Positions 701 through 33,000 of a DNA stretch of 33,000 bases are shown here, in pieces. The stretch is from NCBI GenBank assembly GCA_011109175.1, contig RDEW01000073.1:90662-123661 (forward strand), read 5' to 3'. The DNA comes from Dicyema japonicum. Taxonomy: Eukaryota; Animalia; Dicyemida. Every line of letters starts with the position of its first letter. The stretch's first letter is position 1. The translations under genes and the position numbers were made by a program. A model generated the notes under the pieces. That model did no database searches, had not been told where the DNA came from, and worked only from the letters and a program-made list of their open reading frames with translations.

Positions 701-1279
701 TGTTTTTTTAAACAGTTTTTTACCCGAGTCAACCAGGTGCCAATAGACAGTTAGATTGCTATAATTAGTCCCTCTTTTCCAAATCCAGGACGCAAGTGGC
801 AGTTTATGGAAAGGTTGTGGTGGCAGCATACATATATCGCACTAAATGTTTACTTAGCTCATTGGTGGGTGAAAGGCCCTTGTCTACCTTCTCGTAATTT
901 TGGACGAGGTGAAGCACTCAAGAGGCATCGGGAACATGAAGTTTGAACGAGGGAAGCATCTGATGAGACAGAGTATTCCCACGTGTTGGGTCACAATTAT
1001 ATTATTTTGCATGATATCTACCTCAAGCGAGCTTAATTCAAAAAATTGTCAAATTTGAAAATTTATAATTAAAACGGAAGCACATCTCCCATATAATACC
1101 GCGTGCTCGTTGATGGTTCCTGAGGATCATCAATATGCGCCTGAACTTGAGCCCCAAAAGATGACCCGAGTCGAATGGCTTGAGTAGGTGGATGCTTCGA
1201 GGATTAAGATTCAAACGACGAAAATTGCCAAATTAGGAAATTAGTAAGATTTATAGTAGTCTGTTCCGTTTATTCAGAA

Positions 1280-1693
1280 ATGTACGGAATTTTGAACATT
1301 TTCTTCAGTATAGTGATAGCAGTCGGTACAATCCTTAGTTACTCCCTAGTTGTAATGATTGTGGGAAATATCCCCAACATGATTCCACACAAAAATTACA
1401 ACAAAACAATGACTAATCCCTGCGAGAAGGCTGTATTGGAGACTGATCAGAAGACTCTCGAACTAGTCCTTGATGGAATCACCGACCATAAATGGGCTAA
1501 GTACTCATCAAAGTCCTCAACTAACTCATTCTTTGTATCCGCAACTGGGGATGACATTGGAAAGGATGGAGAGGGAATCTACATTTTGGTCAAAGACAAC
1601 ACATTTTCAAATCCACGTGTTGCACTCAACAACAATCACACGTTTGTTAACCACGAGTTTTCAGCCATCAAGAAACTCAGTTGCTCTAAATAA
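1280..1693 (+). CDS. Orphan small protein with hydrophobic N-terminus (secreted or type II membrane)
   Basis: Open 137-codon frame followed by an AT-rich 3' end. Probable 22-nt 5'UTR intron (gtagtctgttccgtttattcag) just before AAATG, and probable in-frame 24-nt intron gtacaatccttagttactccctag at 1327-1350. Confidence 0.65.
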   Translation: MYGILNIFFSIVIAVGTILSYSLVVMIVGNIPNMIPHKNYNKTMTNPCEKAVLETDQKTLELVLDGITDHKWAKYSSKSSTNSFFVSATGDDIGKDGEGIYILVKDNTFSNPRVALNNNHTFVNHEFSAIKKLSCSK

Positions 1694-1944
1694 CTTCATT
1701 AATGTCCCTAAGCGGGACTATTATTTATTATAATCTATTTCTTCTTGACTTTATTTTGATGATTATCACGTGCACTGAATCAGAGATCCGATTTCGTTTA
1801 GGGGACTTCGAAGACATTATAAACTGAATTTGCAAGAGAAGATACTGCCTTAGGTGATCCCAGCCTCCCTCAGCAACCACCTCACCTTCCCTCAGTGTCA
1901 CTATACGCCTTCTGAGACAACTACTTCACCTCTGACGTTCCTTG

Positions 1945-2120
1945 ATTCTTAGGACGACCAAGAATCACTCTCCAATCGTTCTGAACGAAGACCTCTAAAT
2001 AATCGGGAACCGCCTCAGATGAGAGATGACCTTGCTGATCTGCGTGAACGGACGGTAACAAATGTGCGAAACGAAATTTCATTTAGTCCCCTGTGTGCAC
2101 ATGTTTTGTAATGCTCATAA
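1945..2120 (+). mobile_element. 3' fragment of RTE-like LINE
   Basis: Translates (with indels) to GRPRITL..VLNEDL...DDLADLRER, matching the C-terminus GRPRSTLPTALNKDL...GDDLDELR of the copy at 28055-28825. Confidence 0.65.
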
Positions 2121-2242
2121 TGAAGAAGCACAAATAAGGTCCCCAAGTATTCAATATAACTGAAATGTAAGACAGCCAAGGAGATTGTGATTAAATTTAT
2201 TAAATTCTATAATCTAACAATTATAATATAATTAATTCAAAA

Positions 2243-3044
2243 ATGTCTGAAGAACGGTTGTGTTTTGTTATTATACAGACTTTGTTGGATTTGTCTGTCA
2301 AATGACAATAACCCTTTTGTGAGTCCATGTGCATGTAGAGGGTCCACCAAATGGGTACACAACTCATGTCTTGGGCAGTGGATAGACGTTAAACAACATA
2401 ACACTATGAACCCAGTCTACTGCAGTCTCTGCAACAAGCCATACGCTATCAGATACCCCAAACCAAACGTCACTCTCAGATTCTGCATCTTCTCCTCAGA
2501 AATCATCCAACTTATCTCCAAGGTAGCTGGTGCCAGCGTTATTGCCTTCTCTGTTTACTGGTGTTCTGTCTCCTTCGGTGCTATTACCATTATTCAGGTT
2601 TGTTTTCATGGAAACGACAGACAATTGGCGCCAGACAGGCCTGTGATTTGTTTGATATGTGCACTCTGTCTGACCTTACTGTGGGGCTTCCATGCATCCC
2701 CCTTGTACTGTTTTCATGTCGAAGAATCAATTTCCACAATTCTTTGTTGGAGTCTCTGTTTGGGATCTCTGTGATTGAAAGTACGGAAGATGATGACGAG
2801 GAGCTAATTCTTGGGTCTCTGCTTAGGACTCTGGCCTCGGTGATCTTGTTGCCTACAATAGCAGTCCACACAGGACGTGTTGTCTTTGGGAGAGTGAGTA
2901 ATGCTGTAATGAGGTCACTTCTGGTATACTAAAGTGATGACTTTAGGGGGATTTCTGTATATCCTTGGAAAGTCGGTTTTCAAGTCATTCTTTAGTTATT
3001 TGCTGGAGATGAGACGCAAGACCCGAATTATTGATAATTATTAA
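2243..3044 (+). CDS. MARCHF5: MARCH5/MITOL-like mitochondrial RING-CH E3 ligase
   Basis: RING-CH CWIC...PCACRGSTKWVHNSCLGQWID...CSLC, then SVYWCSVSFGAITIIQ, VGLPCIPLVL, LLPTIA and a C-terminal GFLYILGKSVFK..RIIDNY, colinear with MARCH5. Introns 2257-2278, 2598-2620, 2924-2946. The last junction is one G short of frame. Confidence 0.92.
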
Positions 3045-3612: not shown

Positions 3613-3985
3613 CACCAAGCAAACTATTTCGTATGCGCTTAATGGTGGAAAAGGTTAAGTTTATTTGATGCAGTTGTAAGCAATTTTCTCCACGAGCACG
3701 TGACTGTTCTTATACTTACTTACGTCTTTTATGATGTAGAAGACGTCATCTTTTCCTGAATTAATGCTTTGATTTAAAACTGCTCCCACTTGATAATAAC
3801 GAGTAGTGTCCCAACCAACGTTTATAGGGACTGCTAGTTAACTGAATCACCACAAAACGTGCACGTGTGTTGAATGATGACGGCCAGGGAGAAAGAGGGT
3901 GTCTCAGTAATGGTGTTTAAATGACGACGCTTCGTACCAAATTTTACGATAATTGAATAAATAATAGTAACCATAGAGCCCAACG

Positions 3986-4878
3986 ATGCCACGTGGGGCC
4001 TCTAAAGTAGTTTTGAGTCCCCCATTTTAGAAGCCAGTAATTAAAATATGCAAGGACAAACCTCTCTCAGAAAAGATTCTTAGAAGAGCCGACAACTGGA
4101 TTAAGGAAAACTGGGGACATTTTCTGTTTTACTGCAAGCAAATCAAATCGACGTAAGCAACAACAACAAAATAAAAATCACGGATTTAAGGACAAGTCCT
4201 GAGTCTTCGGTAACCTTAGTTCTCAGGGATCTGAATGCAACCTTCAACACAGCCGAAATCGACTACTTGTCGGCTCTTCTTGACTTTGAAGACTCGGGGG
4301 AGTTCAACTACGAACAGTGCGAACACGGATTCTCCATAATAAAGTACAATATCCCTAAACAGTTACTTCTACGGAAACGTGCTTTTCGAAAAATTGAAGA
4401 TCCCTACTAAGGAACCGGTCCCCAAAAAATGGTGACTGCGAACCTCAAACCACTCCTTCCGTGTGATCACTGCGGAATTCCGCTACCCCAACTCCGAGAC
4501 CTCTGTCCTCAGTTCTCCATATTTTTTTAATTCAGATTTATTAACTTGAAGTGTGTGTTGGTGACCTTCGCAGACTCCGAGTCCCCATTTCATCACACAA
4601 TCGTCTGTCTCCCAACTAGTTCCTTAATTCAGTACGTAATGAGTCGGATTGAGGGGGACCTGGATCTTTCAATATCAGAATTGTCCATATTCAGTGACCT
4701 TTCAAAGTCCAATGCTCTGAGACCAAGTTTAACCATCTCTGAATGCGGTCTTATCGGGTCTAACCTCTTCTATCCCTCGGAATACACATTATTTTACGAC
4801 TTTGATACCCCCATAATAGACTGTCCCCTCCTCAACTCCTACATTGGCCTAAAAATTAACGATCTTCACTTTAAATGA
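3986..4878 (+). CDS. EF-hand pair + CxxC + ubiquitin-like-domain protein
   Basis: Spliced reading MPRGASK|KPVIK...IDVSNNNKIKITDLRTILRDLN...LDFEDSGEFNYEQ (two EF-hand-like loops), PCDHCG, then a beta-grasp-like C-terminus ending LFYDFDTPIIDCPLLN. Micro-introns include 4007-4030 and 4512-4535. Frame problems at ~4145 and ~4425. Confidence 0.65.
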
Positions 4879-6416: not shown

Positions 6417-7589
6417 CCTCTTAAATCTATTTCATTGTCTCTGTCCTTTTGTGCCCTCAGTATTGGTTTTTTGAATTAGGCTTTTACTGCCCAAACACGT
6501 GCGCATCAGAGACTCAATGTACACATAGTTCCGTGAACTCTGCGCATAAAATTTGGCATCAGATGGTGTAGATGACTCCAATCTTAAAGGAGTCTTACGC
6601 CTACCTTCATATCGAGCACCCCCACCGCATCAGAATAGCATTGCATATACGAAGATATCGAATTCAAATCACTTCATGATCTTATTGATTTTTATAGTCT
6701 ACTTGAGTTAACATGTTAACTAGTCAGAGGGTTGATGTGGTGGGGTACCTCATTGTAAAAATGCCCACTTAGCTTTGCGGTGGATGAAAATCTCTTCCAT
6801 CTTCATAAGACATCAGATACCCAACAAGATCTTTATAAGAAAACCAGAAGGTCGTTGATGACTATTTTTTATTGCACAGAAATTAACTGCCGTAGAAAGT
6901 GAGTGAGGTGCCACCAAGAAATCCGTATTTCAATGGAGGGAATCAAGTTATTCCGGTTACTGTACTGAGAGGGGGTGGAACTGTCTAAGAATGAAGTTTA
7001 TTTAGTTACCTCTTCCCTTCAAGTCAAGAAAACCAGTACCCAACAAAACATCGAAAGCATACACTCCCAGAGTTTATTTAATATTTCCGGACACACTCCA
7101 GAGATAAATCCTTCCTCCTTGAGAAGGCAATCAAATACAGTTCTGCAGGGTCAGTGATGTGCTTCCAAAATAAACATGTTATTCAATATACTTTGCCCCA
7201 GTACGGCAATATCCATCACGCTCATCGCGCATCTTGCAATGGCTGTGAAAGAAAGATCCTAGATTGACAGGTAATAACATGGTCATCGAAATTAATTGTT
7301 TTCAAAAATATATTTTTTACAAATAAGCTAAAAATTTGGAAACCTGATCGCAACAAGAACCAAAAATTTTTAAGAATTACCACTAATTCTCTAATAATTA
7401 GACTTCCAAAGACGTCATTGAATCCACCTACGCTCAATGCCTTGGCAGCATTCAAAAATGATCATCTCTCCCCTATCCAACAGTGTTAAAAGCACGTGTA
7501 CCACTCCGACCGGAGGAACTGGATTAACCCTATCTCAGGTTATTAAATCTCCCTAATAAATAAAACATAATACTATTAAAACATAAATA

Positions 7590-9104
7590 TTAGTGATTAC
7601 AGGGAAAAGGGTTGTTATTAACACAAGATCTAAGTACCCCCAAACAGCAATACCTGTGGAATGCATCCCCACATGGAGAGAACACAGCAGAGGAATCAAA
7701 CCTGTACAACAGTTCATTCTTGCCACATAGCATACACTCTCTCCCGCTGGTTCTGCATCTCTAGGGTTATAGCAAGGATAACTCGGCAGGACACTTTTAT
7801 GTGATTCGAAAAAAGCGAGAAAATGTGGACCAATCTGGACAAAAGTAGTCCATGGTGGAGAGCCATTATGTCAGACAAAGTAAAAAGCTGACTCCCGTCT
7901 AGCACATGGTGCATATCGTGCATTTGGTCCCCATTCTCGTCAAGTTGATGCAGCACCTGACTAGAATCCTCGCACTGCCATAAATAGAACCGCATGGAAG
8001 CGATCACCCGCCGATAAGTCTGCAGTAAAGACAAGATTACACTATGATTTCGTCCATTCTGAGATTGGGAGACATCAGAGGGGGGTAATCAGCAGAACTT
8101 GGATCAATTACAGGGTTATTTCTAACCAAATACTGTATCTGAAGTGAGGATCGACACATGTAGTATTTGTTAATGTCCCAATTTAGAAGAACTCGAACTG
8201 GGTTAACAGCCAAGTCGTTCCAGTGACATTTACTGCAGTAATACTTCCCCGTGTAGTCACAAATACGGGGGATAGAGCGAGAGTCTGATTACAACCCACA
8301 ATACTTTGGTAAGAGATTGGAGTTCGGCACTCAAAACACTCGTAATTCTGTAAGTGGAGACCTCCGTCGGGACAGATTTTGGAAGGATATGCAGTGAACT
8401 GCTTCACTTGTACTGAAACACAGACACGTGACAGTTTTGACGTACAGCACACATGGCAGGATAGGTGGCACTCTGGAATAACAGAGTTGTCTACCTGAGC
8501 ATATATAGCAGTTGTAAAGTCGGGGAAATAGGAATCCAAGACATATCTCACAATATGAAGGAAGGGACAGCTGAAGTAACGTGTTGGGGAACAAAATGAG
8601 TGATTTTTTAGAAAAACTATATCTTTCTCAGCTATCTTGAATTATATAAAGGAAACCTTCTCCTGTGAGTCGTTATTTTTGATCTTGGCGTCTATTAATT
8701 CCCTGAGAGCCAACTCCCACTCTGATGTCCCCTCCTCCTGGTTGTGGAAATTCCGTAAGGCCTCGACAATTATGTGCGAATCAATCCTCTTGATCTATGA
8801 TGAGAATATTTGAGGGAACGGGTTGGGGGAAGTAATCGTTGTAAAACTCAATTTTATGAACTTCTTCAACGTTATCAGTTAAGGCAAGCTGATCATAAGA
8901 GCCAATGATTTGGGGACTTTGGGAATCTTCGCACATTTTGTCAGTATATTTGAATCTCTTTCGATACTTTGGGTTGATATTCGTTTGTGGGGAGGTTTTA
9001 CTAACAAATGTCGACTTGGGTAGTCCACTCTCCAAATTACTAATGTAAGGCACTTCCACTAATAAATTTTCTTCATTAAATGATCCACGTCTGGGAGAAT
9101 TCAT
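7590..9104 (-). CDS. DEF8: DEF8 (C1 domain + Rubicon-homology domain)
   Basis: CEIC..YICSECHLSCHVCC (C1), ICPDGGLHLQNYECFECRTPI, RICDYTGKYYCSKCHWNDLAVNPVRVLLNWD and HIKVSCRRC..G.ECMLC. Seven 20-25-nt introns. One unresolved frame break at ~8560-8600. Confidence 0.93.
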
Positions 9105-9164
9105 AAATTTATTAATTCATAATTTGATTTAATTTGAAAAATTAATTTAAATTTTTTTTACCGG

Positions 9165-9615
9165 GTTAGGTAACTAATTCTTCCTTGGTTTATTCTGACT
9201 GATCTCTGGGAACTGCTTGGCCATTCCTTCCATCCCCAGTAAGAGTCGTCTGAAACAGATACACGATTTTGTTTCTACGAGAAGCATTCGAAGACTCGAA
9301 GACAATAAAATATTACAGCGACCCCCTCCTCCAATAGACCAATCAGAATCCTCTCTTTCAAGGGACGTGCGAGTAAACCTGGCTCGTTTACGATGTGGGC
9401 ACCACCCATATCTACCAGCTTATGATGTACTCTCCCCTTCTGCAACCTCCACGTGCTGACAACAAATCACCTATTTCAATGTCATGAATTGGCACAACAT
9501 TTTTTCACAATGCCGGAACTGACCGATTTATGGGAGCGACCACATCTGCTGCGTACTACTTAATAGCTGCTGGCCTCCTGCAAGTTAGTGAGGCTGAGGT
9601 TACTTAACTAACTAA
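9165..9615 (+). mobile_element. 3' end of non-LTR retrotransposon (I/Ingi/Jockey-like) with (TAAC)n tail
   Basis: NKILQRPPPPIDQSESSLSRDVRVNLARLRCGHH..., HLFQC..LTDLWERP C-terminal motifs. Ends ttaactaactaa. Confidence 0.7.
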
Positions 9616-9639
9616 TCTTTGGGAACGCCCGCCTTGATT

Positions 9640-10320
9640 GCTATTATTCTGTTAGCCACCGGTTTCCTCCACTTGAAGGGACTGGAGGTAAATATACAAC
9701 AAATTTTTTAAACACAAAAATGAGAACTTTGAGAAATTGCTCCTCGAGTTTTTCGGGAGGTCGTCAGGCTTAAGGTTATTATATTGGGGTGATAAATAAA
9801 TCAGCATTTTAATAAGGTCCCTAGGAGCAAATCCGCGATCCTCCCATACGTTTCTCGAATTTGTTAGATATTGTGGAAATTGGAAATAAAATTGGTTCAC
9901 CTACTAATTCTTGAATTGTGCCTTGCCAACCTAAATTTTGACATTGTGTCTGGCTAGTAGTTCTCCGTTGATATAGTTGACCTTTAAGACTTTGGAGGAG
10001 TTCCCTGACGTGCCATGAGTTGCTTATTTGCTTCATGGTGAATCAAACTCCTTGTTTTTTTCCTCGCGAGGATGGAAGAGGTGAAGGAGCTGAGGGACTT
10101 CAAATCATGAGATTATGAACGAGGGAAGTCTGAATGTAGAAATCCCAGACTCAAACCAATTAATTGAAAGAATTTAGCCGTCAGAGGGTGATAGCTAACG
10201 TCCAACATGTTTAGACAGGCACTGTCGATCCTTCAAACTTGACTAGTCGAGTAACTGAGCCTAATCCACGTGTACTAAGTCTGATTAAGCACACAACGTG
10301 TCCGAATAAGTCATAAATAA
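9640..10320 (-). mobile_element. Probable degenerate LTR retrotransposon (PBS-like site + gag remnant)
   Basis: Minus strand AATTAAT-TGGTTTGAGTCTGGGA (~10165-10144) resembles an LTR end plus PBS, followed by broken ORFs. Weak similarity only. Confidence 0.3.
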
Positions 10321-10389
10321 TATTTATTGGAAACAAAAGTTATAGGCGGTTTATGGCAGTCTCGCACAAATTGACGCTAGTTCGGAGAA

Positions 10390-12216: not shown

Positions 12217-12721
12217 AATTATAATTGTAATTAATTATTGTTACCTAAATTGGGAATGCTAATAAAACTCACATGAAAGGGATAAATGAGATTATCCGTG
12301 ACCACCCTCTCTAAGTTTGTGGAACAGTTAAATATGAAAATGCAGGGGTAAAGCAGTAAATTTAACTGAAACATACAGCAAAAGTCAATCAAAAAAATAT
12401 AACTTTTCCGCTTATAACTGTTTAAGGAGATGTTATACGCACCCCCGCAGAGTAGGATGGTCCTTCAAAAGAGAGCAATAAGTGGAGTAAAACATACATT
12501 CGTGCAGTCTATCCAACAAACAAGCGCATAATTTTCATATTAAAGACCCAACGTTGAGTCGTCTAATGGGGGCGTGACATAGCGGCAATGCAGTATATTA
12601 CGACAGCCATAAATGTCCCGATCAAAGATGAGGTCAATTACATAAATCTTAGTCTACAACACCACATTTATTACTTCCTACACAGACCACATTAAAAACA
12701 GACATTTCATAAACAAAGTAG

Positions 12722-20870: not shown

Positions 20871-21518
20871 TTCTAATCGAGTGGTGGATAGCAAATGACA
20901 TTAGTCAGCAGATGACTGAGACGAATTACATGAGGTCATTCTTCTGCTTCTTCCCTTTAGACTTGGCCTTTTCTGCGGCGATAATCCGTTTACTGCGCTT
21001 ATAATGTTAAAATAAAGGGGGTTAATTTAGATGGCTTCCCATACTAGAAACTTCCCCTTCTCTAACGGAAAGATGTAATTATGTGAGGCCGTTTTCGACT
21101 TCTCTGTCCATGGCAGTGGGCTTTAATGAAATCTATAAACGGATTGAGTTAGTAATTCCCATAATTGTGTGTTTTAATGTTGGCGCTTTAAGAAGAGAAG
21201 TTTGTGATCTTACTTGTCCTGGACTCCCAGGAGCTGATGTGGATGTACGGAATCCCCAGGGGATAGCTGATTTGGCAGCCCACATCTTAACTGGGGTTAT
21301 TTAAGGGATTTTCCACATTAGCAGAAAAGGGGGAGAAATCTTAGATCATGGAACCCATAAGGAATTGTTAATGACATAACCACGTGTGCAATCAGAACGA
21401 ACCCCGTAGGTAACCAAATTGTCCCCCTAAGTATATCAGAATTATAATTATACCGTAATAGCGTAATATAATTAATATAAATCTGTATAAGTAAACACTT
21501 CCGCATATTGCATATCGA

Positions 21519-23309: not shown

Positions 23310-23395
23310 ACAATTAATACTAATTTATTTTATTTTTGAATTATTCAATTTAGTACTGAATATTTGAAATCTTTAATTTTTAAATATTTATTTTT

Positions 23396-24295
23396 GGTCC
23401 TAGCTTTCGCATCTATTTGGAAGCTGCGTTGAGGGACGTTTGAAAAGAATTGGGTCACTTAAATAACCATTTTGTGGAATTAATATATGCTGATGACATC
23501 GATTTTGTGTCTGAAAATGTGGAGGTACTAAGAACTGTAGTAGATAAAGCTACAACAGTTCTGGAGAGGTGGTCTTTGAAGGTCAATTCAGAAAAAAAGG
23601 AGTTAACTTCGATTCAGCAGTTACCAACACGGATTGATGAGAAATGGAGACTTACTAAAAGGCTCGGCTCGTTTTTGGGTGATGCTGAGGACATTGCTCG
23701 CAGAAAGATGTTGGCATCGTGTGCACTAAAAAAGATGTGGAGTATTTGGACTCTGAAAACTTATCTCCTTAAATCTTCGGATGCGCTCATATAACTCGAT
23801 CATACAACCAGTCCTATTATATAACTCGGGAACATGGGAACTTCAAAAACTGACCTTGACAGACTAGACACATTTCATAGAAATCAATTGAGAAAAATTG
23901 CGGGAATCAAATAGCCACAGATTATCAAAAACGACACTCTACAAATTATGTAAATGCATACTGATAAGCAGAGAAGTAATTACCTCACGCTGGCGACTTT
24001 TCGGACATGTTCTGAGAATGGACGAAGTGATTCCTTGCAATCAAGTCATGGAAGATTACTATTCAAATCATGGAATTGGATTTCGGGGTCGGCCAAGATG
24101 CACGCTTCCCCTCTGCCTGAATAACGATTACGCACTCAAAACTGGAGACGATCTTGAGGATATTTGTAAACGCGCGAGGAACAGAGCTAGATAGAGAGGG
24201 CTGACTGGGAGGATAGTCGAGTGTACGGCACGAGCGAAACCCTAGGCATTTTACGTGCTTATGGCAACGCGGAGTGCTATTAACTAACTAACTAT
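23396..24295 (+). mobile_element. 5'-truncated RTE-like LINE (RT C-terminal half) with (TAAC)n tail
   Basis: IYLEAALRD, YADDIDF, LKVN..K, RWRLFGHVLRM, FRGRPR. Ends gagtgctattaactaactaacta. Confidence 0.92.
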
Positions 24296-24309
24296 TTAAC
24301 AAAAAAACA

Positions 24310-24495
24310 AATTTTAGTTTGGAAGCCGGCTGCGTGATCGTGAACGAGTTCCCTCTGAGTATGCCATTCCAATCTTTTGTCTCAACCAAAACCCTTCTCG
24401 TTGATCTTTTTTCTTCATGGCAAGCATTCCTCCGAGTTCGCGCAAGAACTAAAGCGTCATTGGACCAACGGCTCCTGATGACTCAACCGCCACAT
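24310..24495 (-). mobile_element. 3' end of CRE-like (RLE-endonuclease) non-LTR element
   Basis: AVESSGAVGP...FLRELG..LA....DQREGFWLRQKIGMA(I)LRGN resembles the conserved AVET.G.WG...QRLSIAIQRGN terminus. Confidence 0.7.
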
Positions 24496-24652
24496 TATAA
24501 TTTATTTATCAATTAAGAATTTAAAATTGTCGGGTACCGAGATGAACTTGTAAGGCTGTAAGTTTTATTTTCTATATGGTTGAAATTTTTTCTGCACTTT
24601 CCTTTTTTAATTTCTAAAGGGTTTCATGTGATCCATTTGTCTCAGAGACTCC

Positions 24653-24850
24653 CAGTGCTTGGCTAACTAGGGCGATTTTTGTCAATAAAGTCAAAAAATC
24701 ATATGTTTTTTAAAATTGTCTAAAACTTATAAAAATGTGATTTTTAATCAAAAATATTTTATAAATCAAAAGTTATAAAGTCAAAAAAAGTCAAAATTTA
24801 ATTTTTAGGTCAATAAAGTCAAATTTTTAGTTATTTTTTATTTATTAATT
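24653..24850. mobile_element. Orphan DNA-transposon end with subterminal AAAGTCAA repeats
   Basis: Starts CAGTGCTTGGC and carries multiple (t)aaagtcaa / gtcaataaagtcaa motifs in AT-rich sequence. No partner end seen. Confidence 0.5.
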
Positions 24851-24879
24851 TTTAGAGTTTTTGAATAAAATGCATCACA

Positions 24880-24995
24880 GGTTACGGGTTCGATTCTCGC
24901 TGCTGTTCACCTGGTGGAAGGTTCCACGCATCTACGCCGTCATCAGTGATACTCACTGCGGAGCTGGATTGTCTAGAAAAGACCCACACACAAGT
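24880..24995 (+). mobile_element. tRNA-derived SINE-like repeat, copy 1
   Basis: B-box GGTTCGATTC, then gaaggttccacgcatct...gtcatca.tga...tcactgcgga.ct.gat.gtcta shared with 29325-29470. Confidence 0.7.
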
Positions 24996-25120
24996 GAAGA
25001 TAATTCTTTGGTTCTACGATTAGTTAAAGTTAACTGTTCTTTACTTAAATAAAGTGTGTGTCCTGCCTATGCGGAGCTATAAATATTATGGCTCTCGTGA
25101 AAAGGATATCATTATTATTA

Positions 25121-26443
25121 CAGTGCAACCTCCATTTGGGGCAGACCTCCTCATTGGGCACATCTATTTTTGGGGCACTCCAAGGTTTTGGGGCAGTTTA
25201 AAAATTAGATCATTTTTATACAATAATTTCCAAATTTGGAAATTACCTGAACCTCTTAGTGGGGCACTTAATTTTTTTTAATTTATATAAAGTCTTGCAA
25301 TTAATATTAAATTTAATTATATAAAATTTTCTTAAATTCCGCGTGCTAGATTTGCGTTTTTGTTGTCATGGGGAGGAAGCTTACTCTGGAGTTAAAGCTT
25401 AAAATTGCCCAAGAAATCAACGAAAATTGTTTCATGAGCGAGCGAGATATTGTCAAAAAGTATAAAATTAGTAAAGGTTATCTGATAATTCTATTGTTTT
25501 AGTAGTATCTAGAATTAAACAAAATTATATGAACTTTATAAATAATGGGTCCGTACAATTAAAATTGTCTTAGTCAAATTTCACAGAGAAGAGACAGTCT
25601 GTCACAGAAATTCGATAAAATTGTTTATGAATGCTTTTTAAAGCAAGGGAAGAATTTATTCCCGTTTCAGGACCTATTCTTAAAAACCTTTTGCTTGACA
25701 ATGCAAGTTGTCACAAGAATAATCATTTTTCTAACATTGAGCTATTTTTTCTGCCAAAAAATGCAACATCATTAATTCAACCCTTAGATAGTTATTAAAT
25801 CGTTCAAATCCAAATATTTAAATAATTTGATGATTTTACCCTATCTTTTGAGGATGATAAGTTTACAATGTCGAATTTAAAGCAAGTAAATCTCAGACAA
25901 ATAATCAATATTGTTGGGAAGACATGGCAACAAATACACTCTTAATCAATTACTAATTGTTGGAAGAAAATTGATGAATGTCGTTTTCAAACTCTCTCAT
26001 TGGTGAATAATGAATTGGAGAGTTTAGATAACATAAAGATATACTGAAAATGATGACGAGAATATATACGACGAAGTAAAATGTACCTATTTTCATTTGG
26101 AAACAATAACAGCGATGAATACACTTGAAGATAACATTTTCAATTTGTTTCCTGAAGCTTTGAAAGATTATTATAATTTCAGAAAAATATTAGGAATACA
26201 AATGAAAAAATCCGCAACCGGAGGGAAATTAACAGACTATTTTTCTATCGTTAAATAAATTTGTTTTTAATATAATTCTGAAAAATCTATAAAAAAATTA
26301 TATTATCTATAAATTTAATAAAAAGCAAATTTAAATTGTTAAACTGTGGATAAATCTAAAGAAAATGCCCAACCTCCATTTTTGGGAAACCTCTGTTTTT
26401 GGGGCATTTTTTTAAATAGGTGCCCCAAATAGAGGTCATACTG
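25121..26443 (+). mobile_element. pogo/Tigger DNA transposon, internally deleted
   Basis: TIRs cagtgcaacctccatttggggc / gccccaaatagaggtcatactg flanked by TA. CENP-B-like HTH MGRKLTLELKLKIAQEI..SERDIVKKYKISK, and DDE_1 motifs LLDNASCH and FLPKNATSLIQPLD. Confidence 0.93.
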
Positions 26444-27054
26444 TATTATTATTATTAAAAGCACTCCCGAGAAAACATAAATTAGTTAAGTTTCCCTTGT
26501 GCCGTATTCCTAATCATCCTCTTTGTCAACGTCGATCATGATCCTCTGTTGCACGCTATTTCTATTAGGTAGTCCAGATCGTCCGCCGAAATTAGTCTCA
26601 TACCAACCGCCGACAGGTCTTCGTTCAAGATAGTCGAAGTGTCGTTCTTGGTCTTCCGCAAAATCCGTCTCCTGTGTGTGCGAAGTAGTTGAGCATTGCG
26701 AAATTTGAGGGGACCTGGTCATTTAGACGTCTTGATTGAAAATATCATCTGACCTAACGCCGTATTTGCATTTATTATAAAGGTTTGCATCAGAGATCTT
26801 CATAGGCCAGTTAATCTTGATTTTTGAGCTGAGCTCTGTGGAAGTTGTAGGTTAGTATCGGGATGACAAAAGCTTTGTATATTCTAAATCTGGTGTTTAG
26901 TTCTATCCTCTTCTTGTGGCTAGGTCGCAGTTGGTGTTTCTTATGAGGTTGTTTAAGTCCTCTGCAATTGAAAGTTCCCAGAGTGAACGGAGAAGTCGGT
27001 AAAGAATACGAATAAGACATAGTGCAATAGAAATGTCGTCACCACCTCAACCAT
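26444..27054 (-). mobile_element. Internally deleted RTE-like derivative with (TAA)n tail
   Basis: 5' TGGTTGAGGTGGTGACG. MSYSYSLPTSPFTLGTFNCRGLK (APE start) is fused to RFRIYKAFVIPILTYN (post-RT region). 3' hairpin gcac...gtgc, then taataataa. Confidence 0.85.
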
Positions 27055-27079
27055 AAAAGGTTATTGTTTGTGTAAAAGG

Positions 27080-28931
27080 CAAGGTTGTTAGATTTAGATC
27101 ATTTGATTTTAATCAACAAAAAAATCAATGATTTAAATCATTAAAAAAAATTAAATGATTTTTTTTTTAATCTGGAAGAAAGCGTGATGCCTTGTGGGTT
27201 CACTTCGATAAACGTATTATTCCTGGAAAGACCGGGAGTCGAGCTAGATACCGTAATTGCGGGAAGGAGGTATAAGGTCTCAGATGAGGCAGCATCATTT
27301 GTTATGTCGAACTAATATTGATATCTCTGAAAATCTGTTGAAACCTGATAGTGATTTTATAAGCGAATTCCTCCCATGGATGAGGGACCAGTCTTTAATC
27401 AATTTCTTTACTACGACGACGTCATCGAGGAAAAATTTGATTGACATGCAACTCGCTAGATAGATATATTCCAGTAACACTCCTTTTGCTGCTGTAAAAC
27501 ATCCGGATTTTGTCAAATTCGTCCAATTGCTTCTTCCTGAGAATCGTATACCCTCTCATCATCAAATTGGTGGTCCATTGCTCGATCGTGTGTACGACCA
27601 AATACATGAAGACTGTTGGCAAAGACTCCAGGACAAGACAGTGTCTATTATGTTGGACGGGTGGAGTAACATTCATAATGAATCCGTTATTTATTTGTCA
27701 GTTGTAACATCGGATGGAGAAAGTTTTCTAATTGACACTGTGACACCTCTGGATTGGGCTGAACATTATGAATATGCTCTTCCGACTCTGATTAATTTCA
27801 GAGCAAAAGCTGATTCATTCAAACTATACATGTTCGTTCCGGAATTGTTACCTTAAAGTAATTTCACTCTGCAAAAATCTTAGAGCAGTTGCTTCCACAG
27901 GTGGAATTAGAACGATTTTTTTTCGACTTTTGGATTTTTACATTCAAATGGCTGGGAATTGTAAAAGCTGCCAACCATATACCTTGAATCTGCACTCCGC
28001 GACCTCCGTAAATGCTATATAGGAGACATAGAAGAGACATCTTATGCGGATGATGTGGATTTTGTATCACGGGATGTGACCGCACTCCAACACCTGCTAG
28101 AAAATGCACCTGCGGAGCTTGAGAAATGGTTTCTCAGCGTAAATGTTAACAAAACTGAAATTACGGAAATCAAAAGAGAAGACGATATTACTCATGAAAG
28201 ATGGAGACGTACTAATAAGCTCGGCTCTCTACTAGGAGACGCTGAAGATGTACTAAGGAGGAAAACACTGGCAAATGCGGCAATGGCTAAACTGAAGAAA
28301 GGATGGCTAAGGGCCAAAGGACTTGGAATTGACATCAGATGCAGGCTTTACAACGCGTTTGTGAAACCGATCCTACTGTATAACGCTGGGACATGGGGAA
28401 GTTCCTTCAACGAACTATTGAAACTGGATTCGTTCCATAGAAGGCAACTAAGAAGCTTACTCGGAATGGAGTGGCCACGTAGAATATCAACCACTGGTAT
28501 CTACAACAAGTGTATGTGTTCTTACATCAGCAAGGATGTGATAGATGCCCGGTGGAGGCTATTTGGGCATGTACTAAGAATGAACCCGGACGCACCCGCT
28601 AACAAAGCGATGGAAGATTACTTTGACAGATGCGAAAAACCCTTCCGCGGACGACCTAGATCGACACTTCCGACAGCCCTAAACAAAGACTTAAATCGCG
28701 TGAGAAAAAATCTAAAGACGGGAGACGACCTGGACGAATTGAGATCACTCGCATTCGACAGAGGAAGATGGAAAAGACTAACTATAAATATTGTTTCTTT
28801 GAGTGTTGCACATGCGGGGCTATAATCATTATGGCTTTCGTGAAAGTGCTTAAATAATAATTTGTTTCCGAATAAAAAATCATTTAATTCAAAAAAATCT
28901 GATTTAAATCAAAAAAATCCTGTTTAAATCT
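27080..28931 (+). mobile_element. hAT DNA transposon remnant, interrupted by RTE-like LINE
   Basis: Left end CAAGGTTG and GATTTAAATC subterminal repeats at both ends. BED-like LWVHFD...CGKE, catalytic VSIMLDGWSNIHNESVI (DUF659-like), and dimerisation-domain ASTGGIERFFS.FG. Confidence 0.88.
27976..28860 (+). mobile_element. 5'-truncated RTE-like LINE with intact C-terminal ORF (young insertion)
   Basis: IYLESALRD..YADDVDF..LSVNVNKTE..LYNAFVKPILLYNAGTW..RWRLFGHVLRM..FRGRPR, uninterrupted to stop 28825. 3' hairpin and taataa tail. Confidence 0.93.
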
Positions 28932-29324
28932 AAAAGGCTTAAAGTGGCATAGACTGGGAATTAGGACAGATGACTCTGTTGGAGGCTTCTTTGATTGTGG
29001 ATAGCCTGTTCCACTTGTGTCGCCATTAATTGTGGATTTGATTCACCTAGGATTTTCTAATACTACGTCGTGACTTCTTTGATGCATAAGAATCACCATG
29101 AGATCCATCTGTCTTAGGAGATGCCTATTCCCAAACCGGCATTCAAAAATGATCACTTATCTACTCCACTAGAGGAGTTCCAAAAACTGCTGATATGGGT
29201 AGTTGAAAAGGATCCGTCTCAACAGAATATACCCTAATTGGACGTCAATCAACGCTTAACCTTTTCTCGGTATATCCAGGGTAATTAAATTAATCCGGGG
29301 GTATTAAAATAGCTTTATTTATTT

Positions 29325-29470
29325 CGGGTGGCTAAGAGGTCTGAGTTCCCCTAGTTCGAATTTCGGTTGAAGGTTCCACGCATCTGTGAAGCTTTAGCTT
29401 GACGAGTGAGTCATCAATGAATATTTCACTGCGGAACTCGATCGTCTATAAAGGACATACATCCAACAAA
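29325..29470 (+). mobile_element. tRNA-derived SINE-like repeat, copy 2
   Basis: A-box-like TGGCTAAGAGG, B-box-like GTTCGAAT and a core shared with 24880-24995. Confidence 0.7.
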
Positions 29471-29479
29471 AAAAAGTGA

Positions 29480-30000
29480 AGAGCATTCCTTAGCTCTCCC
29501 TCTACGAATAGTTATAATAACCGTGTACTGTCTGAATGGAGCTATAGCTACATGGCTCTGGTCTACCGGCCATCGATGTCTGTGAACAATAATGTCCCAA
29601 GTGAGGTGAATGGTAATGTTCTGAGCCAGGCTCCATTCTCGTTCGTCGATGCAGAAGCCAGAAGCGGCCAGACAATGCTGATCAAACACAGGTTTTATCT
29701 CTTCTATCTTTGAACATAAAAGCTTGTCGTATTATCGTTGTTTATTAGCGTTCTTCGGAAATCCAACACCCAGTCGTGTCCAGAAATCCCGAGCTACGCA
29801 TGCCACTTGTTCAGCGTCCGATCCGTTAATATAGCGTAGGATCTGAGGGCGAGTTATAGTAGTGAGCGTACTCCGATTCCTCCTTAGGGAAGCAGTATTT
29901 TGAGTTGAATCCAGCCACTTTTATAATAAGTAATGTTGAGTGTTCCTTCACGGCAGTCCTCAGCTTCTCGTCGATGGCTCATAGGAAGTTCATGTCAGTG
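29480..30000 (-). mobile_element. Degenerate CRE-like non-LTR fragment
   Basis: GAWLRTLP..LG motif on the minus strand (~29635-29600). Otherwise decayed. Confidence 0.4.
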
Positions 30001-30419
30001 AAACATGGGCTGTCCGTCCGTAAAAAAAAAAGGCTTAAGGTGAAAATTCCTGAGGAAGAATAAAGACTTTTGGGAGTCCAGGGTTTTTAAATTTGATGTC
30101 CTCTACACAAGAAACGTTTATGATTTCATATTTATACGGGTTCGGTTCCAACCAAGTGCCGCAAGTGCAGAGATGACGGACTCGACTTCTGCCACCACAA
30201 ATTCCCAATTAAATCCTACGGGCGCAGCATCCAGGTACTATAGGTTCAGCGGTGTTCGCATCGCTGATGCTGCACAGTCGATTTAATTTTTTTTAAATAA
30301 TTAATTTCATATTTTTTAAATGAGTTTGGGGACCCTAGTGTGGTTGGAATCTTAAGCGATTGTCTGAAGACACAACGAGGTGGTAGGGTGGTTACATTTT
30401 ATTTGTCCAAAGTGTATGA

Positions 30420-31250
30420 TATTTTAAAGTCCAAGGGATTAAAAACCCGCTCGGTTCTGTCAATTGACGTCGCCTATTCTGGTATCGCAAGAAACCGAAT
30501 TCCTCGTGACGGAGGAGGCGGAATTGATGGACTTCTTTCCTCTCACATATCAGGGATCTCATTGCGAGTCATTCAGCTGTACGAGTCTTGTCTTGAGAAA
30601 TGTCATTGGTGATGTTCCCTCTGTCGGGCACTCGAGATCTGGAAATTGGCAAGGGGACCAGCTTGGACCACTCCTCTTTGTCAATCGATGATGTTACTCC
30701 CCGCTCAACGCATGATATCTGGATGACGCTATGATCGGAAGGTCACATGAATCTGTTTTGGATGACCTCTATGTTATTGTCCGTCTTTGAAGGGTCTTGG
30801 TTTGGCCCTTAATACCTCGAAGACTGAGATTATCCACATATGTAGTTGGCAGAGTTCTCAAAGATCAGTTTTCTGGAGCTAAAATCAGGGGTGTGGGTAA
30901 ATCGTCTTTCCTAAGGGCTTGTTTTGATGACGAGAGTGTTTCCGCAAGGAATCTTTGTTGCACTTTCTATCTAAGTATTTCATCACCAAATTACATCATC
31001 GAACCTATTGGACTTGGAGATATGACGATCTTCCCGTTCTCCAAAGGAAGCTCTTTTGTATAGTGCATAACCTGTGTTGATGCCTTCTCGCCGAATGTGA
31101 TTACCGCTATGAACATAGACGCGCCAAAATGATACCCCGAAGCACCGATGTATTCTCCAAGTGTATAGAAAGTGCATTGGGTCGCGGGAGGAACATCGAG
31201 AAAAGTTAATAAGACTACTAAGAGAAGCTGAAATCACCTAGTAAACATGG
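30420..31250 (+). mobile_element. Degenerate CRE-like reverse transcriptase
   Basis: SIDVA(NAF), SGNWQGDQLGPLLF, YLDDAMIG and GLALNTSKTEI motifs across frameshifts. Confidence 0.75.
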
Positions 31251-31827
31251 TTCCTCCCTACTTAGCGGTGATTTTATTTATTTTTTTTTAATAAAATAAA
31301 TTGGAGAAATTGAAATAAATAAATAAGAAAGATCAATACTTGGATAGGGATAACTTTTTCAAAGAGTAGTAATTGGAAAATGCTCTAAATATTTTAATTT
31401 AAGAAACCACATGACCGCTAGGAAAGGTGTCAAACCAACTAATTAATTTCTCCAACTTCTAGTAACTTCCGTACTCTCATTGGGCGGTCCAGCGATACCA
31501 CCGTTTTCCGAAAGTGTTTTCTGCTGAGGAACTGGATCGGAACTCATCCACGTGGGTAACAATTTCCCCAAATAGCAGAAGTGGAAACATCATTTTGATA
31601 ACGCAATTATTCCTCGTGTCTATCCCCGACATTAGTGACCCCGAAGCATCATTATTTCAAAAATACAGAATTCCGACGTCTCCCAATTCATTACGAAGGG
31701 GGACGCGGCTTATCGAGAAGATGCAGACATCAGGTGTACTTTAGCTGTGCCATGGTACCCCAGAGCAACGTCACCACCCGACCCATTAACCTTAGATACT
31801 ACAACAAAGTAATAAAAAATATAAAAA

Positions 31828-32247
31828 TTATTGAGAAAATTCTAAAATTTGCTCATAAAAATCAATGACATGGTAGGGATAACGGAGATTGGCTTCCTCA
31901 GCCGAGAGAATGTCGGTCTCCTTGGAATTCTTCCTGAAATGTACATAAGTGTTACCATCTCATAGTGAACGTTAGTTTACCATCAATCATATTAGCGTCC
32001 TCAATGTAGGAAGGTTCTTTCACGACACATTCTTTAGTTTTCTTACTCTTCTTGGTTACCTTAGCAACCTTGGATTCGTATTTTTTGATAAGGTAGTTAC
32101 AATTCATATTATCAATTGGTTCCCATGTATTTTCAGAGCTATCACTATTTATCAATGTTAACCTAGAAAACCCTTCCATTTGACTAAATAGTGCTTCTTT
32201 CCATTGAGAATGCTATCATCCAGTATTGACTCCACCTCGAACTCCAT
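31828..32247 (-). CDS. CBX1: Heterochromatin protein 1 (chromo + chromoshadow), minimal ~124 aa
   Basis: MEFEVESILD..GKKHYLVKWKGFS.SENTWEPIDNMNC and FTMRWKNSKETDILSAEEANLRYPYHVIDFYEQIL. Introns of 24 and 22 nt. One T missing at 32167-32170. The paralogue (CBX1/3/5) cannot be assigned. Confidence 0.92.
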
Positions 32248-33000
32248 TAAATTATTATTCAAATTTTTTTTATTATTAAATTTAATTTTTTAATTTTTTT
32301 TTTGTGTTCTGACCGGATGGCGAAGTGTAATAAGTTCCTGACCAAATAATAATCCACTCTGAGGATCCCTTTGAATTACTAGTCCTAAAAATCAACCTCT
32401 CGTCGCTTCAAATGACAATTGTGACATCTCTTACCGTCATTTCCCTCTGTTATCGTCCTGATCTCATCCGCTTCATCCGACTGGAAAAATACTTCGAAAC
32501 GACCTAAACGCAGTTCTGCGTTATCCTAATCAATAACTAGGTCAGCAGGAGTACTCATACCAGACAAAATTTTTTATGATTCAAGTAAACACACGTGGGT
32601 CCAGTGAAAACTCCATTAAGTTAATTCACACACCAAAAACCATAATCAACTTCCAACGAGGATTCTAGCCCCTTCCACGTACTTATTGAACAACACCCCA
32701 TATCCATCGTTTGTGGGCTGTCACGTGTTTTGGAAAACTGGTCCTTCAAAAGATCTGTTCGTTCTTCGTACTTAACCCTTTCCAACATGGTTTCCACACA
32801 AGATACTCAACCAAAACTCACTTGACCAAACTAAATATTCCTAACAACACGAAAGGACTGTTTTGGTCTCGATTGACAGACATTTGATTTCGTCCCCGGA
32901 AAATCATAACAACACAAATTTTCTTAACATCCATCCACCCTATTCTCATACATGAAAACTTTTTCAGGGACCGCAGGAGCAAGTGATATTCATGTCCATG

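Follow-up and report, generated by a model that had tools for sequence, protein, structure and literature searches.

The palindrome CACGTG as a candidate bHLH-ZIP binding word spread through the compact genes of Dicyema japonicum

By far the most over-represented hexamer of the Dicyema japonicum genome is CACGTG, and its excess is strongest in host genes, where it fills silent positions of exons beyond what codon usage predicts. The best explanation, which we hold tentatively, is that CACGTG acts as a binding word for bHLH-ZIP proteins, selected and distributed throughout the compact host genes; the sites would be bound by Max/Myc/USF-like proteins and kept up by selection rather than by biased repair. 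The analysis covers 270 kb of sequence together with word counts over the whole genome (67.5 Mb in 377 scaffolds, with 23-nt introns).

The window, by which we mean the whole stretch of 33,000 nt that was analysed (GC content 39.5%), contains 23 CACGTG sites, every one exactly where a sequence-only reading had listed it (Table 1). That reading expected about four sites at a GC content of about 38%; the GC estimate was too low, and a Markov model of order 0 gives 4.6. Models of order 1, 2, and 3 predict 3.3, 4.4, and 6.8 sites (Poisson P = 8e-7 for 23 seen at order 3), and the order-4 model, which already includes the 5-mers of CACGTG itself, predicts 13.9 (P = 0.016). In 100 dinucleotide shuffles of the window the mean was 3.4 sites and the maximum 9. 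CACGTG ranks first among the hexamers of the window, the palindrome GACGTC occurs nine times, as had been estimated, and the excess of CACGTG in the window is confirmed. Its absence between 21.8 and 31.5 kb was likewise borne out (P = 3e-4 given 23 sites in 33 kb), as was its absence from the best-preserved transposable elements (TEs) there.

Table 1 CACGTG sites and associated features of the window, in order of position.
Feature	Positions	Strand	Context
CACGTG	980..985		No long ORF over site; ATG of ORF 1280-1693 (+) lies ~300 bp downstream
CACGTG	1614..1619		In ORF 1208-1690 (+), CCA-CGT-GTT (Pro-Arg-Val); gene only putative because there is no Pfam match
CACGTG	1767..1772		~75 bp beyond the stop of ORF 1280-1693; ~0.5 kb upstream of a RING-variant (MARCH-like) gene
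Three CACGTG (3697, 3862, 3990)	3697..3995		Non-ORF DNA, within 300 bp, flanked by the RING-variant gene and ORF 4105-4407 (+); resembles intergenic or promoter DNA
CACGTG	6496..6501		65-codon ORF without Pfam support; thin cover by transcript-type contigs
CACGTG	7493..7498		~160 bp outside the spliced transcript contig (end at 7654) belonging to a Rubicon-homology-domain gene (-); uncovered
CACGTG	8425..8430	-	In spliced transcript contig 7654-9105; ORF 8186-8641 (-), TCA-CGT-GTC (Ser-Arg-Val); same gene as RH_dom exons 7717-8288
395-bp high-copy dispersed repeat holding CACGTG 9450	9221..9615		At least 601 candidate copies in the genome
CACGTG	10267..10272		43 bp outside the PDZ-gene (-) transcript contig, which ends at 10310
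CACGTG	11365..11370	-	PDZ-gene exon, ORF 10705-11409 (-), CAC-GTG (His-Val); 13 nt from the 159-nt intron 11384-11542
CACGTG	11706..11711	-	PDZ-domain exon, ORF 11542-11934 (-), CCA-CGT-GGG (Pro-Arg-Gly)
CACGTG	14722..14727		~120 bp from a synaptobrevin-like ORF; covered by a 42-codon ORF only
CACGTG	14899..14904	-	ORF 14840-15103 (-), weak Synaptobrevin match (E 0.027), GCA-CGT-GTC (Ala-Arg-Val)
CACGTG	16205..16210	+	ORF 15974-16240 (+), weak HMG-box match (E 0.009), CAC-GTG (His-Val)
CACGTG	18081..18086	+	Last exon of a HAD-like hydrolase, ORF 17954-18187, Hydrolase_like (E 4e-5), CCA-CGT-GGA (Pro-Arg-Gly)
CACGTG	20271..20276		In ORF 19985-20377 (+), no Pfam hit, by eye resembling a decayed LINE endonuclease; adjacent 18.5-19.5 kb matches other repeats at ~83%
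Two CACGTG (21381, 21816)	21381..21821		Left edge of the CACGTG-free block; 21816 at the start of Lys/Glu-rich ORF 21665-22603
CACGTG-free block, 9.7 kb	21822..31548		Lys/Glu-rich ORF with internal repeats, fragments resembling LINE reverse transcriptase, several dispersed repeats
Young LINE 3' fragment	27974..28861	+	39 copies, scored among >5,000 candidates, 96-100% identical; no CACGTG
Three CACGTG (31549, 32592, 32722)	31549..32727		Right of the TE block; unique DNA with putative short ORFs

The excess extends beyond the window and is genome-wide. The whole genome contains 21,851 CACGTG compared with 4,535 of the reversed word GTGCAC, about 2.4-2.8x the order-0 expectation; an independent 200 kb holds 68 sites where 17-28 are expected, and twelve bHLH-gene loci, selected without regard to CACGTG, hold 24 where 4.6 are expected (0.64/kb). 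Hyper-abundance of this word is unreported for dicyemids in the literature that we searched. Density differs between compartments, with 0.78 sites/kb (5.8x expected) in 57.8 kb of gene-rich DNA, a sample that includes the window itself, picked for CACGTG, and 0.34 sites/kb (2.9x) in 204 kb of TE-rich DNA. In gene-rich DNA the z-score of CACGTG is 18.9; the next words, with z of 7.8 or less, overlap it, no unrelated word approaches its excess, and the one-off neighbours CCCGTG and CATGTG are depleted (ratios 0.20 and 0.67). Word statistics showed no enrichment of the shorter words ACGT, CACG, and CGTG, and because it is one 6-bp palindrome that is enriched and not these, the specificity speaks for a dimeric protein that recognises this word rather than for compositional bias. 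Coding and non-coding parts of gene-rich DNA share the excess evenly (~5.5-6x each), and the flanks of most sites are unrelated to each other. Density in exons equals or exceeds that in flanks, with no concentration upstream of genes, which agrees with the earlier view that this is not a promoter-confined motif and is unusual for a transcription-factor site.

Exons were called here from ORFs, Pfam matches, and a pair of transcript contigs rather than from full gene models; exons supported by Pfam or transcripts carry 1.4 CACGTG/kb, 4-10x the codon-shuffled nulls. Ten exonic sites in nine genes had been proposed; this stands for 8425, 11365, and 11706, which lie in spliced transcript contigs, and for 18081 in the HAD-domain exon, while 1614, 14899, and 16205 fall in plausible ORFs that Pfam supports weakly or not at all. 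Across 9.8 kb of supported ORFs there are 14 sites, compared with 2.4, 3.7, and 1.4 in three codon-preserving shuffles, and none of 400 shuffled sets reached 14. Codon-shuffle nulls cannot account for the exonic excess, so neither codon usage nor, in line with the earlier claim, amino-acid sequence explains it. Compatible X-Arg-Z tripeptides are spelled xCA-CGT-G in 9 of 20 cases (0.98 expected), or as CACGTG in 5 of 15 (0.81 expected) when only unbiased ORFs are used, and the effect depends on both neighbouring codons. About 40% of silent-site opportunities are occupied by CACGTG, a saturation that to our knowledge exceeds that of any animal transcription-factor word. This packing at silent codon positions suggests a DNA-binding protein reading gene DNA, rather than slow chance accumulation.

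The exonic concentration could also be explained by an effect at the level of RNA or translation, either an exonic CACGUG signal (used, for example, in splicing over ultra-short introns) or a favoured codon pair NCA-CGU-G. Such an effect would fit the highest density lying in exons, the extremely short introns of the lineage, and the single frame xCA-CGT-G shared by 9 of the 14 exonic sites, but we regard it as very improbable. All three reading frames are represented, consistent with the earlier claim of differing frames, and the other two are also raised (5 sites vs 1.5 expected); moreover, non-ORF gene-rich DNA is enriched ~6x, and sites occur beyond transcript ends and in an intergenic cluster. 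CACGTG and its preferred extension CCACGTGG are both palindromic, for which an RNA or codon-pair signal gives no reason.

Candidate readers of a DNA word are present in the genome. A domain search returned 37 HLH hits, of which 12-15 are class-B (Max/Myc/USF-like) bHLH loci, several of them Max/Myc-like; the class-B basic-region signature H-N-x-x-E-R-x-R-R occurs in 11 of the 37, with the close variant H-N-x-x-E-K-x-R-R in another (L029), and the best solved-structure matches of the class-B hits are Max, Myc, and USF2/MITF. The share of class-B proteins looks high, and these predicted loci make the bHLH-ZIP reader proposed from the sequence a plausible cause. Flanking bases show a palindromic preference in which C..G is favoured and T..A avoided: CCACGTGG accounts for 12.6% of sites vs 3.6% expected, and TCACGTGA, with one TE family excluded, for 4.7% vs 9.6% expected. 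SELEX work has shown that Myc/Max prefers C/G next to the core and avoids T/A.

The Dicyema word thus shares with the Myc/Max E-box an identical 6-bp core, the flank preference, and the presence of cognate Max/Myc/USF-like genes, and animal Myc targets likewise have CACGTG near or just within the transcribed region (PMC2570694, citing Hulf et al.). It differs in being the top hexamer of a whole genome, in occurring about once per kb in every reading frame and in gene bodies and flanks alike, in the fraction of silent-site opportunities filled, and in not being limited to a regulon or to promoters. The same core is bound by the bHLH-ZIP protein Cbf1 at yeast CDEI and by bZIP dimers at the plant G-box, and Cbf1 serves as a general regulatory factor in the organisation of chromatin (PMC5880240). 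Those sites, however, occupy promoters and centromeres and lack the genome-wide and exonic over-representation of the Dicyema sites. No centromere context was seen here, and, one TE family aside, the T-flanked Cbf1-type form TCACGTGA is used less than expected.

A methylation or repair target comparable to cyanobacterial HIP1 had also been put forward, and this proposal is not supported by the domain search, in which the assembly yielded no DNA methyltransferase domain of the cytosine (C5) or N4/N6 type; methylation-linked repair bias is left without a candidate enzyme, which counts toward the binding-word reading. Words raised by VSP repair, such as CCWGG in enterobacteria, are likewise short palindromes elevated genome-wide, genes included, but that mechanism requires a cognate C5 methyltransferase and depletes T-containing neighbour words. 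Here that domain is missing from the search results, CATGTG/CACATG are enriched in TE-rich DNA (ratio 1.35, vs 0.67 in gene-rich DNA), and neutral repeat copies show no gain. HIP1 (GCGATCGC) remains similar in being one short palindrome that is hyper-abundant in coding as well as non-coding DNA, with roughly one copy or more for each gene and above codon-usage expectation, and that is apparently selected with no proven function (PMC5861425). It differs in its 15-300x enrichment, compared with 3-6x here in an animal, in the cognate methyltransferases of the bacteria that carry it, and in that Dicyema has an obvious candidate family of reader proteins.

More generally, a neutral, time-dependent mutation or repair drive could convert near-cognate words to CACGTG or protect it, in which case old DNA would be richer in the word than young DNA. 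The youngest repeats do lack it (the window LINE, and 0 sites in 11 kb of sequence at least 95% identical in the 200-kb sample, although that class is mostly one local segmental duplication), and the depletion of CCCGTG and CATGTG in gene-rich DNA would also fit. We nevertheless consider such a drive improbable. Diverged repeat copies (70-93% identity) share 14 CACGTG, rank 1 of 180 composition-matched words, whereas private sites number only 4, at the background for matched words (mean 2.65). The excess therefore resides in inherited sites, which does not support a build-up of the word with residence time. Where a site has been lost, its place is taken by CATGTG, CACATG, or TACGTG, ordinary transition products, showing that TE-borne CACGTG is inherited and decaying; the deamination-type product is enriched rather than depleted in TE-rich DNA, and a decayed LINE remnant within the gene-rich part of the window has CACGTG at TE-level density.

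The 2.9x excess of TE-rich DNA is thus inherited, several TE families having had the word in their ancestral sequence, and it could be argued that the whole excess is TE-carried, with the word present in TE consensus sequences and in unrecognisable ancient remains that inflate counts without any host function. Repeats make up 49% of the Dicyema japonicum genome (PMC6736024), and of 17 sites located within detectable repeats, 13 are common to paralogous copies. At least two abundant TE families bear the word, namely that of ATCACGTGAT, a LINE/SINE 3' end with 964 genome occurrences vs 12 for a control, and the 395-bp repeat around site 9450, with no fewer than 601 candidate copies at 90-96% identity and a summed contig depth ~800x that of its flanks; the assignment of all window sites to host or old DNA accordingly fails for 9450. 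We judge this account no likelier than the neutral drive, as the highest densities occur at silent positions of unique host exons with Pfam or transcript support, the difference between 5.8x and 2.9x is left unexplained, most site flanks are mutually unrelated, and the identified families cover roughly 5-15% of sites.

Somewhat less improbable, though still unlikely, is that CACGTG serves genome maintenance as a gene-marking "self" word, whose density would let a symmetric DNA-binding factor, perhaps these bHLH-ZIPs themselves, distinguish gene DNA from TE DNA for heterochromatin exclusion, or for retention or selective amplification of gene DNA during somatic chromatin diminution. The even density of coding and non-coding gene-rich DNA, the sharp kb-scale contrast with adjacent TE DNA in the window, the silent-position sites in all three frames, and the lack of a detected cytosine methyltransferase domain for marking DNA otherwise are consistent with this, and chromatin diminution or elimination together with selective amplification has been reported for dicyemid somatic cells (PMC6543705). 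Because abundant TE families carry CACGTG, however, the word is not the clean host-versus-TE mark that had been suggested, and a "self" mark would be leaky.

We therefore retain the selected bHLH-ZIP binding word as the best reading; of the earlier interpretation, it keeps the genome-wide excess of a single palindrome not confined to promoters and the bHLH-ZIP reader, and drops residence time, methylation, and the clean TE mark. Genes here measure ~1.4 kb, their introns are 23-40 nt, and the spacers are short, so gene-proximal DNA is nearly all exon. Class-B bHLH-ZIP dimers of the Max/Myc/USF type would read CACGTG on double-stranded DNA, and the word would be placed wherever protein sequence permits, mostly as xCA-CGT-Gxx at silent positions, and in short flanks, giving gene DNA a density of roughly one site per kb. 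It may act by its density across the gene, signalling general activation or open chromatin, and not as a promoter switch with a fixed position. CACGTG also belongs to the sequence of some successful TE families, whose copies simply decay after insertion.

A pattern search of the window returned exactly the 23 CACGTG sites that the sequence-only reading had counted by hand, as well as its nine copies of GACGTC. At a G+C content of 39.5%, Markov models of order 0 to 4 predict 4.6, 3.3, 4.4, 6.8 and 13.9 CACGTG sites, respectively, and 100 dinucleotide-preserving shuffles of the window gave a mean of 3.4 and a maximum of 9. The excess persists against third-order (P = 8e-7) and fourth-order (P = 0.016) Markov nulls; the order-4 expectation makes use of the 5-mers of CACGTG, which are themselves inflated, and the 23 sites still lie above it. 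No hexamer of the window deviates more strongly than CACGTG, and those ranked next overlap it. The claim of a site-free block was also borne out, with no site across 21,822-31,548 (P = 3e-4 given 23 sites in 33 kb), although a zero count here is at chance level (about 1 expected) and is a significant departure only when set against the density of host DNA. An apparently regular spacing of about 1 kb between sites 6496 and 11365 was set aside, as the number of sites is too low to test.

Outside the window we analysed 200 kb of another scaffold and twelve 3-kb loci, together with word counts for the whole assembly (67,542,437 bp in 377 pieces and 1.24% heterozygous; the published Dicyema japonicum genome is described as 67.5 Mb in 377 scaffolds, 49% of it repeats, with 5,012 genes and introns averaging 38 bp, PMC6736024). 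Assembly-wide, CACGTG occurs 21,851 times and the reversed word GTGCAC 4,535 times, which corresponds to 2.4-2.8 times and about 0.5-0.6 times the composition expectation, respectively; this control matches CACGTG in base content and in every dinucleotide step but one, GC taking the place of CG. The independent 200-kb sample, which holds 68 sites where 17-28 are expected (orders 1-3), confirms that the excess is not peculiar to the window, and CACGTG is its top non-AT-rich hexamer. The 4-mers ACGT, CACG and CGTG show no enrichment, so that the excess belongs to the hexamer as a whole, and with CpG observed/expected at 0.8-0.86 a general CpG effect does not account for the signal. The 8-mer CCACGTGG has 2,763 genome copies versus 147 for its reverse, an enrichment of 8-10x. 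GTGCAC is itself scarce in the 200-kb sample (6 versus 17-20 expected).

We then compared gene-rich DNA, pooled from the non-TE part of the window and eleven bHLH-gene loci (57.8 kb), with 204 kb of TE-rich DNA, made up of the 200-kb sample and the TE block of the window; because the bHLH loci were fetched for another purpose, they are unbiased with respect to CACGTG. Gene-rich DNA carries 0.78 sites per kb (5.8x the order-2 expectation, z = 18.9), with runner-up words that reach z of 7.8 or less and overlap CACGTG, versus 0.34 per kb (2.9x expected) in TE-rich DNA. All twelve bHLH loci taken alone hold 24 sites versus 4.6 expected. In the 200-kb sample, Pfam scans showed the long ORFs to be mostly reverse transcriptases, and the few host genes present (a class-I tRNA synthetase fragment, KIN17, POU and a bHLH) carry or adjoin sites. 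Enrichment is alike, at about 5.5-6x, in gene-rich stretches with and without long ORFs, and densities are 1.4-1.55 sites per kb in exons and 0.5-0.7 per kb in flanks. Long-ORF cover proved uninformative as a proxy for coding sequence because exons are short. As a practical matter, CACGTG density distinguishes host genes from TE ORFs (about 1.4 versus 0.3 per kb) and may aid the annotation of dicyemid genomes.

The excess within exons is not an amino-acid effect, as had been argued from the sequence alone, nor is it one of codon usage. Our coding set comprised 24 ORFs (9.8 kb) that were either supported by Pfam or directly adjoined such ORFs in the same gene, each exon being treated singly; a self-trained gene finder combining codon and 3-periodic Markov models was weak (it missed a RING-variant gene) and was used only to choose ORFs for Pfam scans. 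These ORFs contain 14 CACGTG sites (1.43 per kb), whereas codon-preserving shuffles gave 2.4 under synonymous resampling from pooled usage, 3.7 under synonymous permutation within ORFs and 1.4 under permutation of codon order, and none of 400 trials of any type reached 14. All three reading frames are used, with 3 sites as CAC-GTG, 9 as xCA-CGT-Gxx and 2 as xxC-ACG-TGx, and against synonymous permutation no hexamer of the set ranks above CACGTG. Tripeptides of the form [S/P/T/A]-Arg-[V/A/D/E/G] are spelled as CACGTG in 9 of 20 cases, versus 0.98 expected from codon usage, and the unbiased bHLH ORFs alone give 5 of 15 versus 0.81 (P = 0.0015). Both neighbours are needed, since CGT codons lie between CA and G in 9 of 37 cases with about 0.5 expected, and arginine codons other than CGT show no such neighbour effect. 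Overlap with splice sites (CAC/GTGAG) holds for only a few sites.

The position of sites relative to transcripts could be followed in part of the window with contigs of one sequencing run, X5, whose splicing shows that they derive from transcripts. By these contigs, sites 8425, 11365 and 11706 are exonic, whereas site 7493 falls 160 bp, and site 10267 43 bp, beyond the end of a transcript. X5 is recorded as 'DNA?', yet its contigs are confined to genes and lack many mini-introns as well as a CT..AC intron of 159 nt (11384-11542); it is the only one of the three runs examined that behaves as a transcript assembly, and no run recorded as RNA was found. An exact look-up of ORF 1280-1693 in public records and a word-based protein search with ORF 10705-11409 returned no match. 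No variants are listed at seven of the sites, a comparison with no power given an expectation below 1.

It had been proposed that CACGTG builds up with the time that DNA resides in the genome. Our results do not support this, and we regard it as provisionally refuted, the sample of 33 kb of aligned repeats being small: the excess lies in shared rather than private sites. Among sites in detectable repeats, 13 of 17 are common to paralogous copies, and copies that have lost the word show the ordinary transition products CATGTG, CACATG or TACGTG. Across all alignments below 93% identity (33 kb), compared with 180 words of identical composition, CACGTG has 14 paralog-shared sites, the top of the 180 words (mean 2.5), and 4 private sites versus a mean of 2.65 for matched words. 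The deamination-type neighbours CATGTG/CACATG stand at a ratio of 1.35 in TE-rich DNA and 0.67 in gene-rich DNA. Taken together, the shared-site excess and these ratios indicate that TE-borne sites were inherited from element ancestors and are decaying, and that host sites are kept. The same data differ from a VSP-like word driven by repair, as private gain is at background and the neighbours are raised, not depleted, in TE-rich DNA. Two further comparisons carried no weight: the lack of the word from young repeats of the 200-kb sample adds little because most of that class comes from a single local segmental duplication, and conservation inside repeats (22 of 39 kept versus 12.4 expected) was left unused, as CACGTG is only 167th among 978 words in this respect and the pairs are not independent.

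A methyltransferase acting on CACGTG had also been suggested, and here the evidence points the other way. A six-frame search of the assembly found no C5 (PF00145, not even DNMT2-like) or N4/N6 (PF01555) methyltransferase domain, which suggests that cytosine DNA methylation is lacking in this animal and sets the word apart from the HIP1 type, which has a cognate enzyme. A methylation-linked repair drive has nothing to stand on; the absence of the domains is itself not proven, because the assembly is incomplete, at about 76% BUSCO (PMC6736024).

Candidate readers are encoded. The genome has 37 matches to the HLH domain (PF00010), and among the twelve best a class-B basic region (His-Asn..Glu-Arg/Lys.Arg-Arg) is present in seven, and one further match is ARNT-like. 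Eleven PF00010 matches carry H-N-x-x-E-R-x-R-R, and one bHLH locus, L029, carries the K variant; the back-translated basic-region pattern occurs at 20 places versus 4 for a control, and 11 of the 20 coincide with HLH matches. In other organisms, the class-B basic region reads CACGTG. Among solved structures in the PDB, three loci are closest to Max and Myc and one is closest to USF2/MITF. Two Myc-like bHLH duplicates lie 44 kb apart on one scaffold (C24:685083 and C24:729375) with identical basic-region DNA, a second Myc-like pair lies on different scaffolds (C24:918422 and C68:816543; about 80% protein identity), and there are separate Max-like loci (L029, L031 and L032). It is possible that the Myc/Max network has been enlarged in this lineage.

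The flanks of the word bear on which of these proteins might read it. Among 91 sites most flanks are unrelated to one another, and information is present at position -1 only, where C is preferred and G avoided; the longer form CAAATC-CACGTG, apparent in the window, failed across these sites. Genome-wide, the palindromic C..G flank CCACGTGG accounts for 12.6% of sites versus 3.6% expected, and the T..A flank TCACGTGA for 4.7% versus 9.6% expected after removal of the ATCACGTGAT repeat family. Myc/Max tolerates or favours C/G beside the core and disfavours T..A, and we take the flanks found here to be the Myc/Max pattern rather than that of USF, TFE or Cbf1. The hexamer-specific palindrome, the C..G preference and the cognate class-B bHLH-ZIP genes are therefore all shared with the Myc/Max E-box. 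The difference lies in placement, as the concentration at promoters or near transcription start sites that is typical of the Myc/Max E-box is not seen: last exons and DNA past transcript ends hold sites, in what is a coarse comparison with unmapped start sites. On scaffold C1, where copies of CCACGTGG are on average about 25 kb apart, three of the four protein-kinase loci have one within them or no more than 0.9 kb away and the fourth has one at 1.1 kb, by a cut-off set post hoc; two bHLH loci on this scaffold have none within 2 kb.

On these sequence comparisons, the reading we favour, at slightly less than even odds, is that CACGTG is a selected double-stranded-DNA word, with Max/Myc-type dimers as candidate readers, spread through compact host genes. 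Such dimers would read CACGTG across these genes; introns are 23-40 nt, so exons make up most of the gene-proximal DNA, and the word would therefore be written into silent positions. The lack of promoter bias and the unusually high saturation speak against this reading. The closest parallel is HIP1 of cyanobacteria, a hyper-abundant palindrome at silent sites (PMC5861425), with which CACGTG shares a coding excess beyond amino-acid and codon usage, occurrence in several frames and enrichment of about 6x in non-ORF gene-rich DNA; the 15-300-fold excess of HIP1-type words is above that found here, which is 2.4-2.8x across the genome and 5.8x in gene-rich DNA, with 8-10x for the 8-mer CCACGTGG. 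Chromatin diminution and selective amplification have been reported for dicyemids (PMC6543705), and the most interesting rival explanation, though an unlikely one, is that the word marks genes in connection with these processes. Less likely still, in our estimation, is an animal HIP1-like word in the full sense, whereby selection would keep CACGTG at silent and non-coding positions in essentially all host genes and an enlarged Max/Myc-like family would read a density code separating genes from the repeat half of the genome, which could guide the DNA that is kept open, retained or selectively amplified in somatic chromatin diminution.

If CACGTG is indeed a selected word, a code at the DNA level, superimposed on that for protein, would constrain a large share of the 'silent' codon positions of this extremely reduced animal, making this among the clearest animal cases of overlapping regulatory and coding information and a eukaryotic parallel to the unexplained HIP1; estimates of synonymous rates in this lineage would need to be treated as biased. 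Max/Myc-like proteins and one hexamer offer a concrete handle on gene regulation in an animal of about 5,000 genes and some 30 cells, for which chromatin diminution has been reported and no cytosine methyltransferase was detected. The E-box and its readers are textbook knowledge, and the genome-wide CACGTG excess appears to be unreported for a dicyemid: a full-text literature search found no link between dicyemids and CACGTG, and it is absent from two dicyemid genome papers (PMC6736024, PMC6543705).

A minority of sites share extended flanks, belonging to the ATCACGTGAT family, a 395-bp repeat and a few small families; most sites are unrelated. A LINE/SINE 3' end reads ...GGGATCACGTGATTAGTTAG..., and the 10-mer ATCACGTGAT has 964 genome copies versus 12 for its control. 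Coordinates of these and other features are collected in the table.

Features of the window and of scaffold C1 (positions in the window unless a scaffold is named)
Feature	Position	Remarks
395-bp dispersed repeat with site 9450	9221-9615	At least 601 candidate copies, 90-96% identity
LINE 3' fragment, 888 bp	27974-28861	In the site-free block; 39 scored of >5,000 first-look candidates, 96-100% identical, on many scaffolds
Two long Lys/Glu-rich ORFs	21665-23217	Internal tandem repeat of about 141 bp at 22017-22568, copies about 85% alike
Segmental duplication, about 7 kb, 94-99% identity	C1:1128655-1135913 and 1137017-1143875 (loci L013-L015)	LINE reverse-transcriptase and endonuclease ORFs
Transcripts from run X5	7654-9105 and 10310-12022	Spliced contigs (window 6400-12300)
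23-nt GT..AG intron	near 2597-2619	In the RING-variant (MARCH-like) gene, whose two reading frames it joins; ultra-short dicyemid type

The Lys/Glu-rich ORFs, which may belong either to a host gene or to a TE, have no Pfam match. The copies of the LINE 3' fragment look like the product of a very recent or ongoing retrotransposon burst. Some 120 bp separate the 395-bp repeat from the 5' end of the transcript with a Rubicon-homology domain, and many loose contig ends fall at 9243, 9434, 9542 and 9615. Its depth, part of which may come from extrachromosomal circular DNA, is about 800x that of its flanks, with summed contigs of sequencing run X1 reaching about 230,000-270,000 versus about 320-350.
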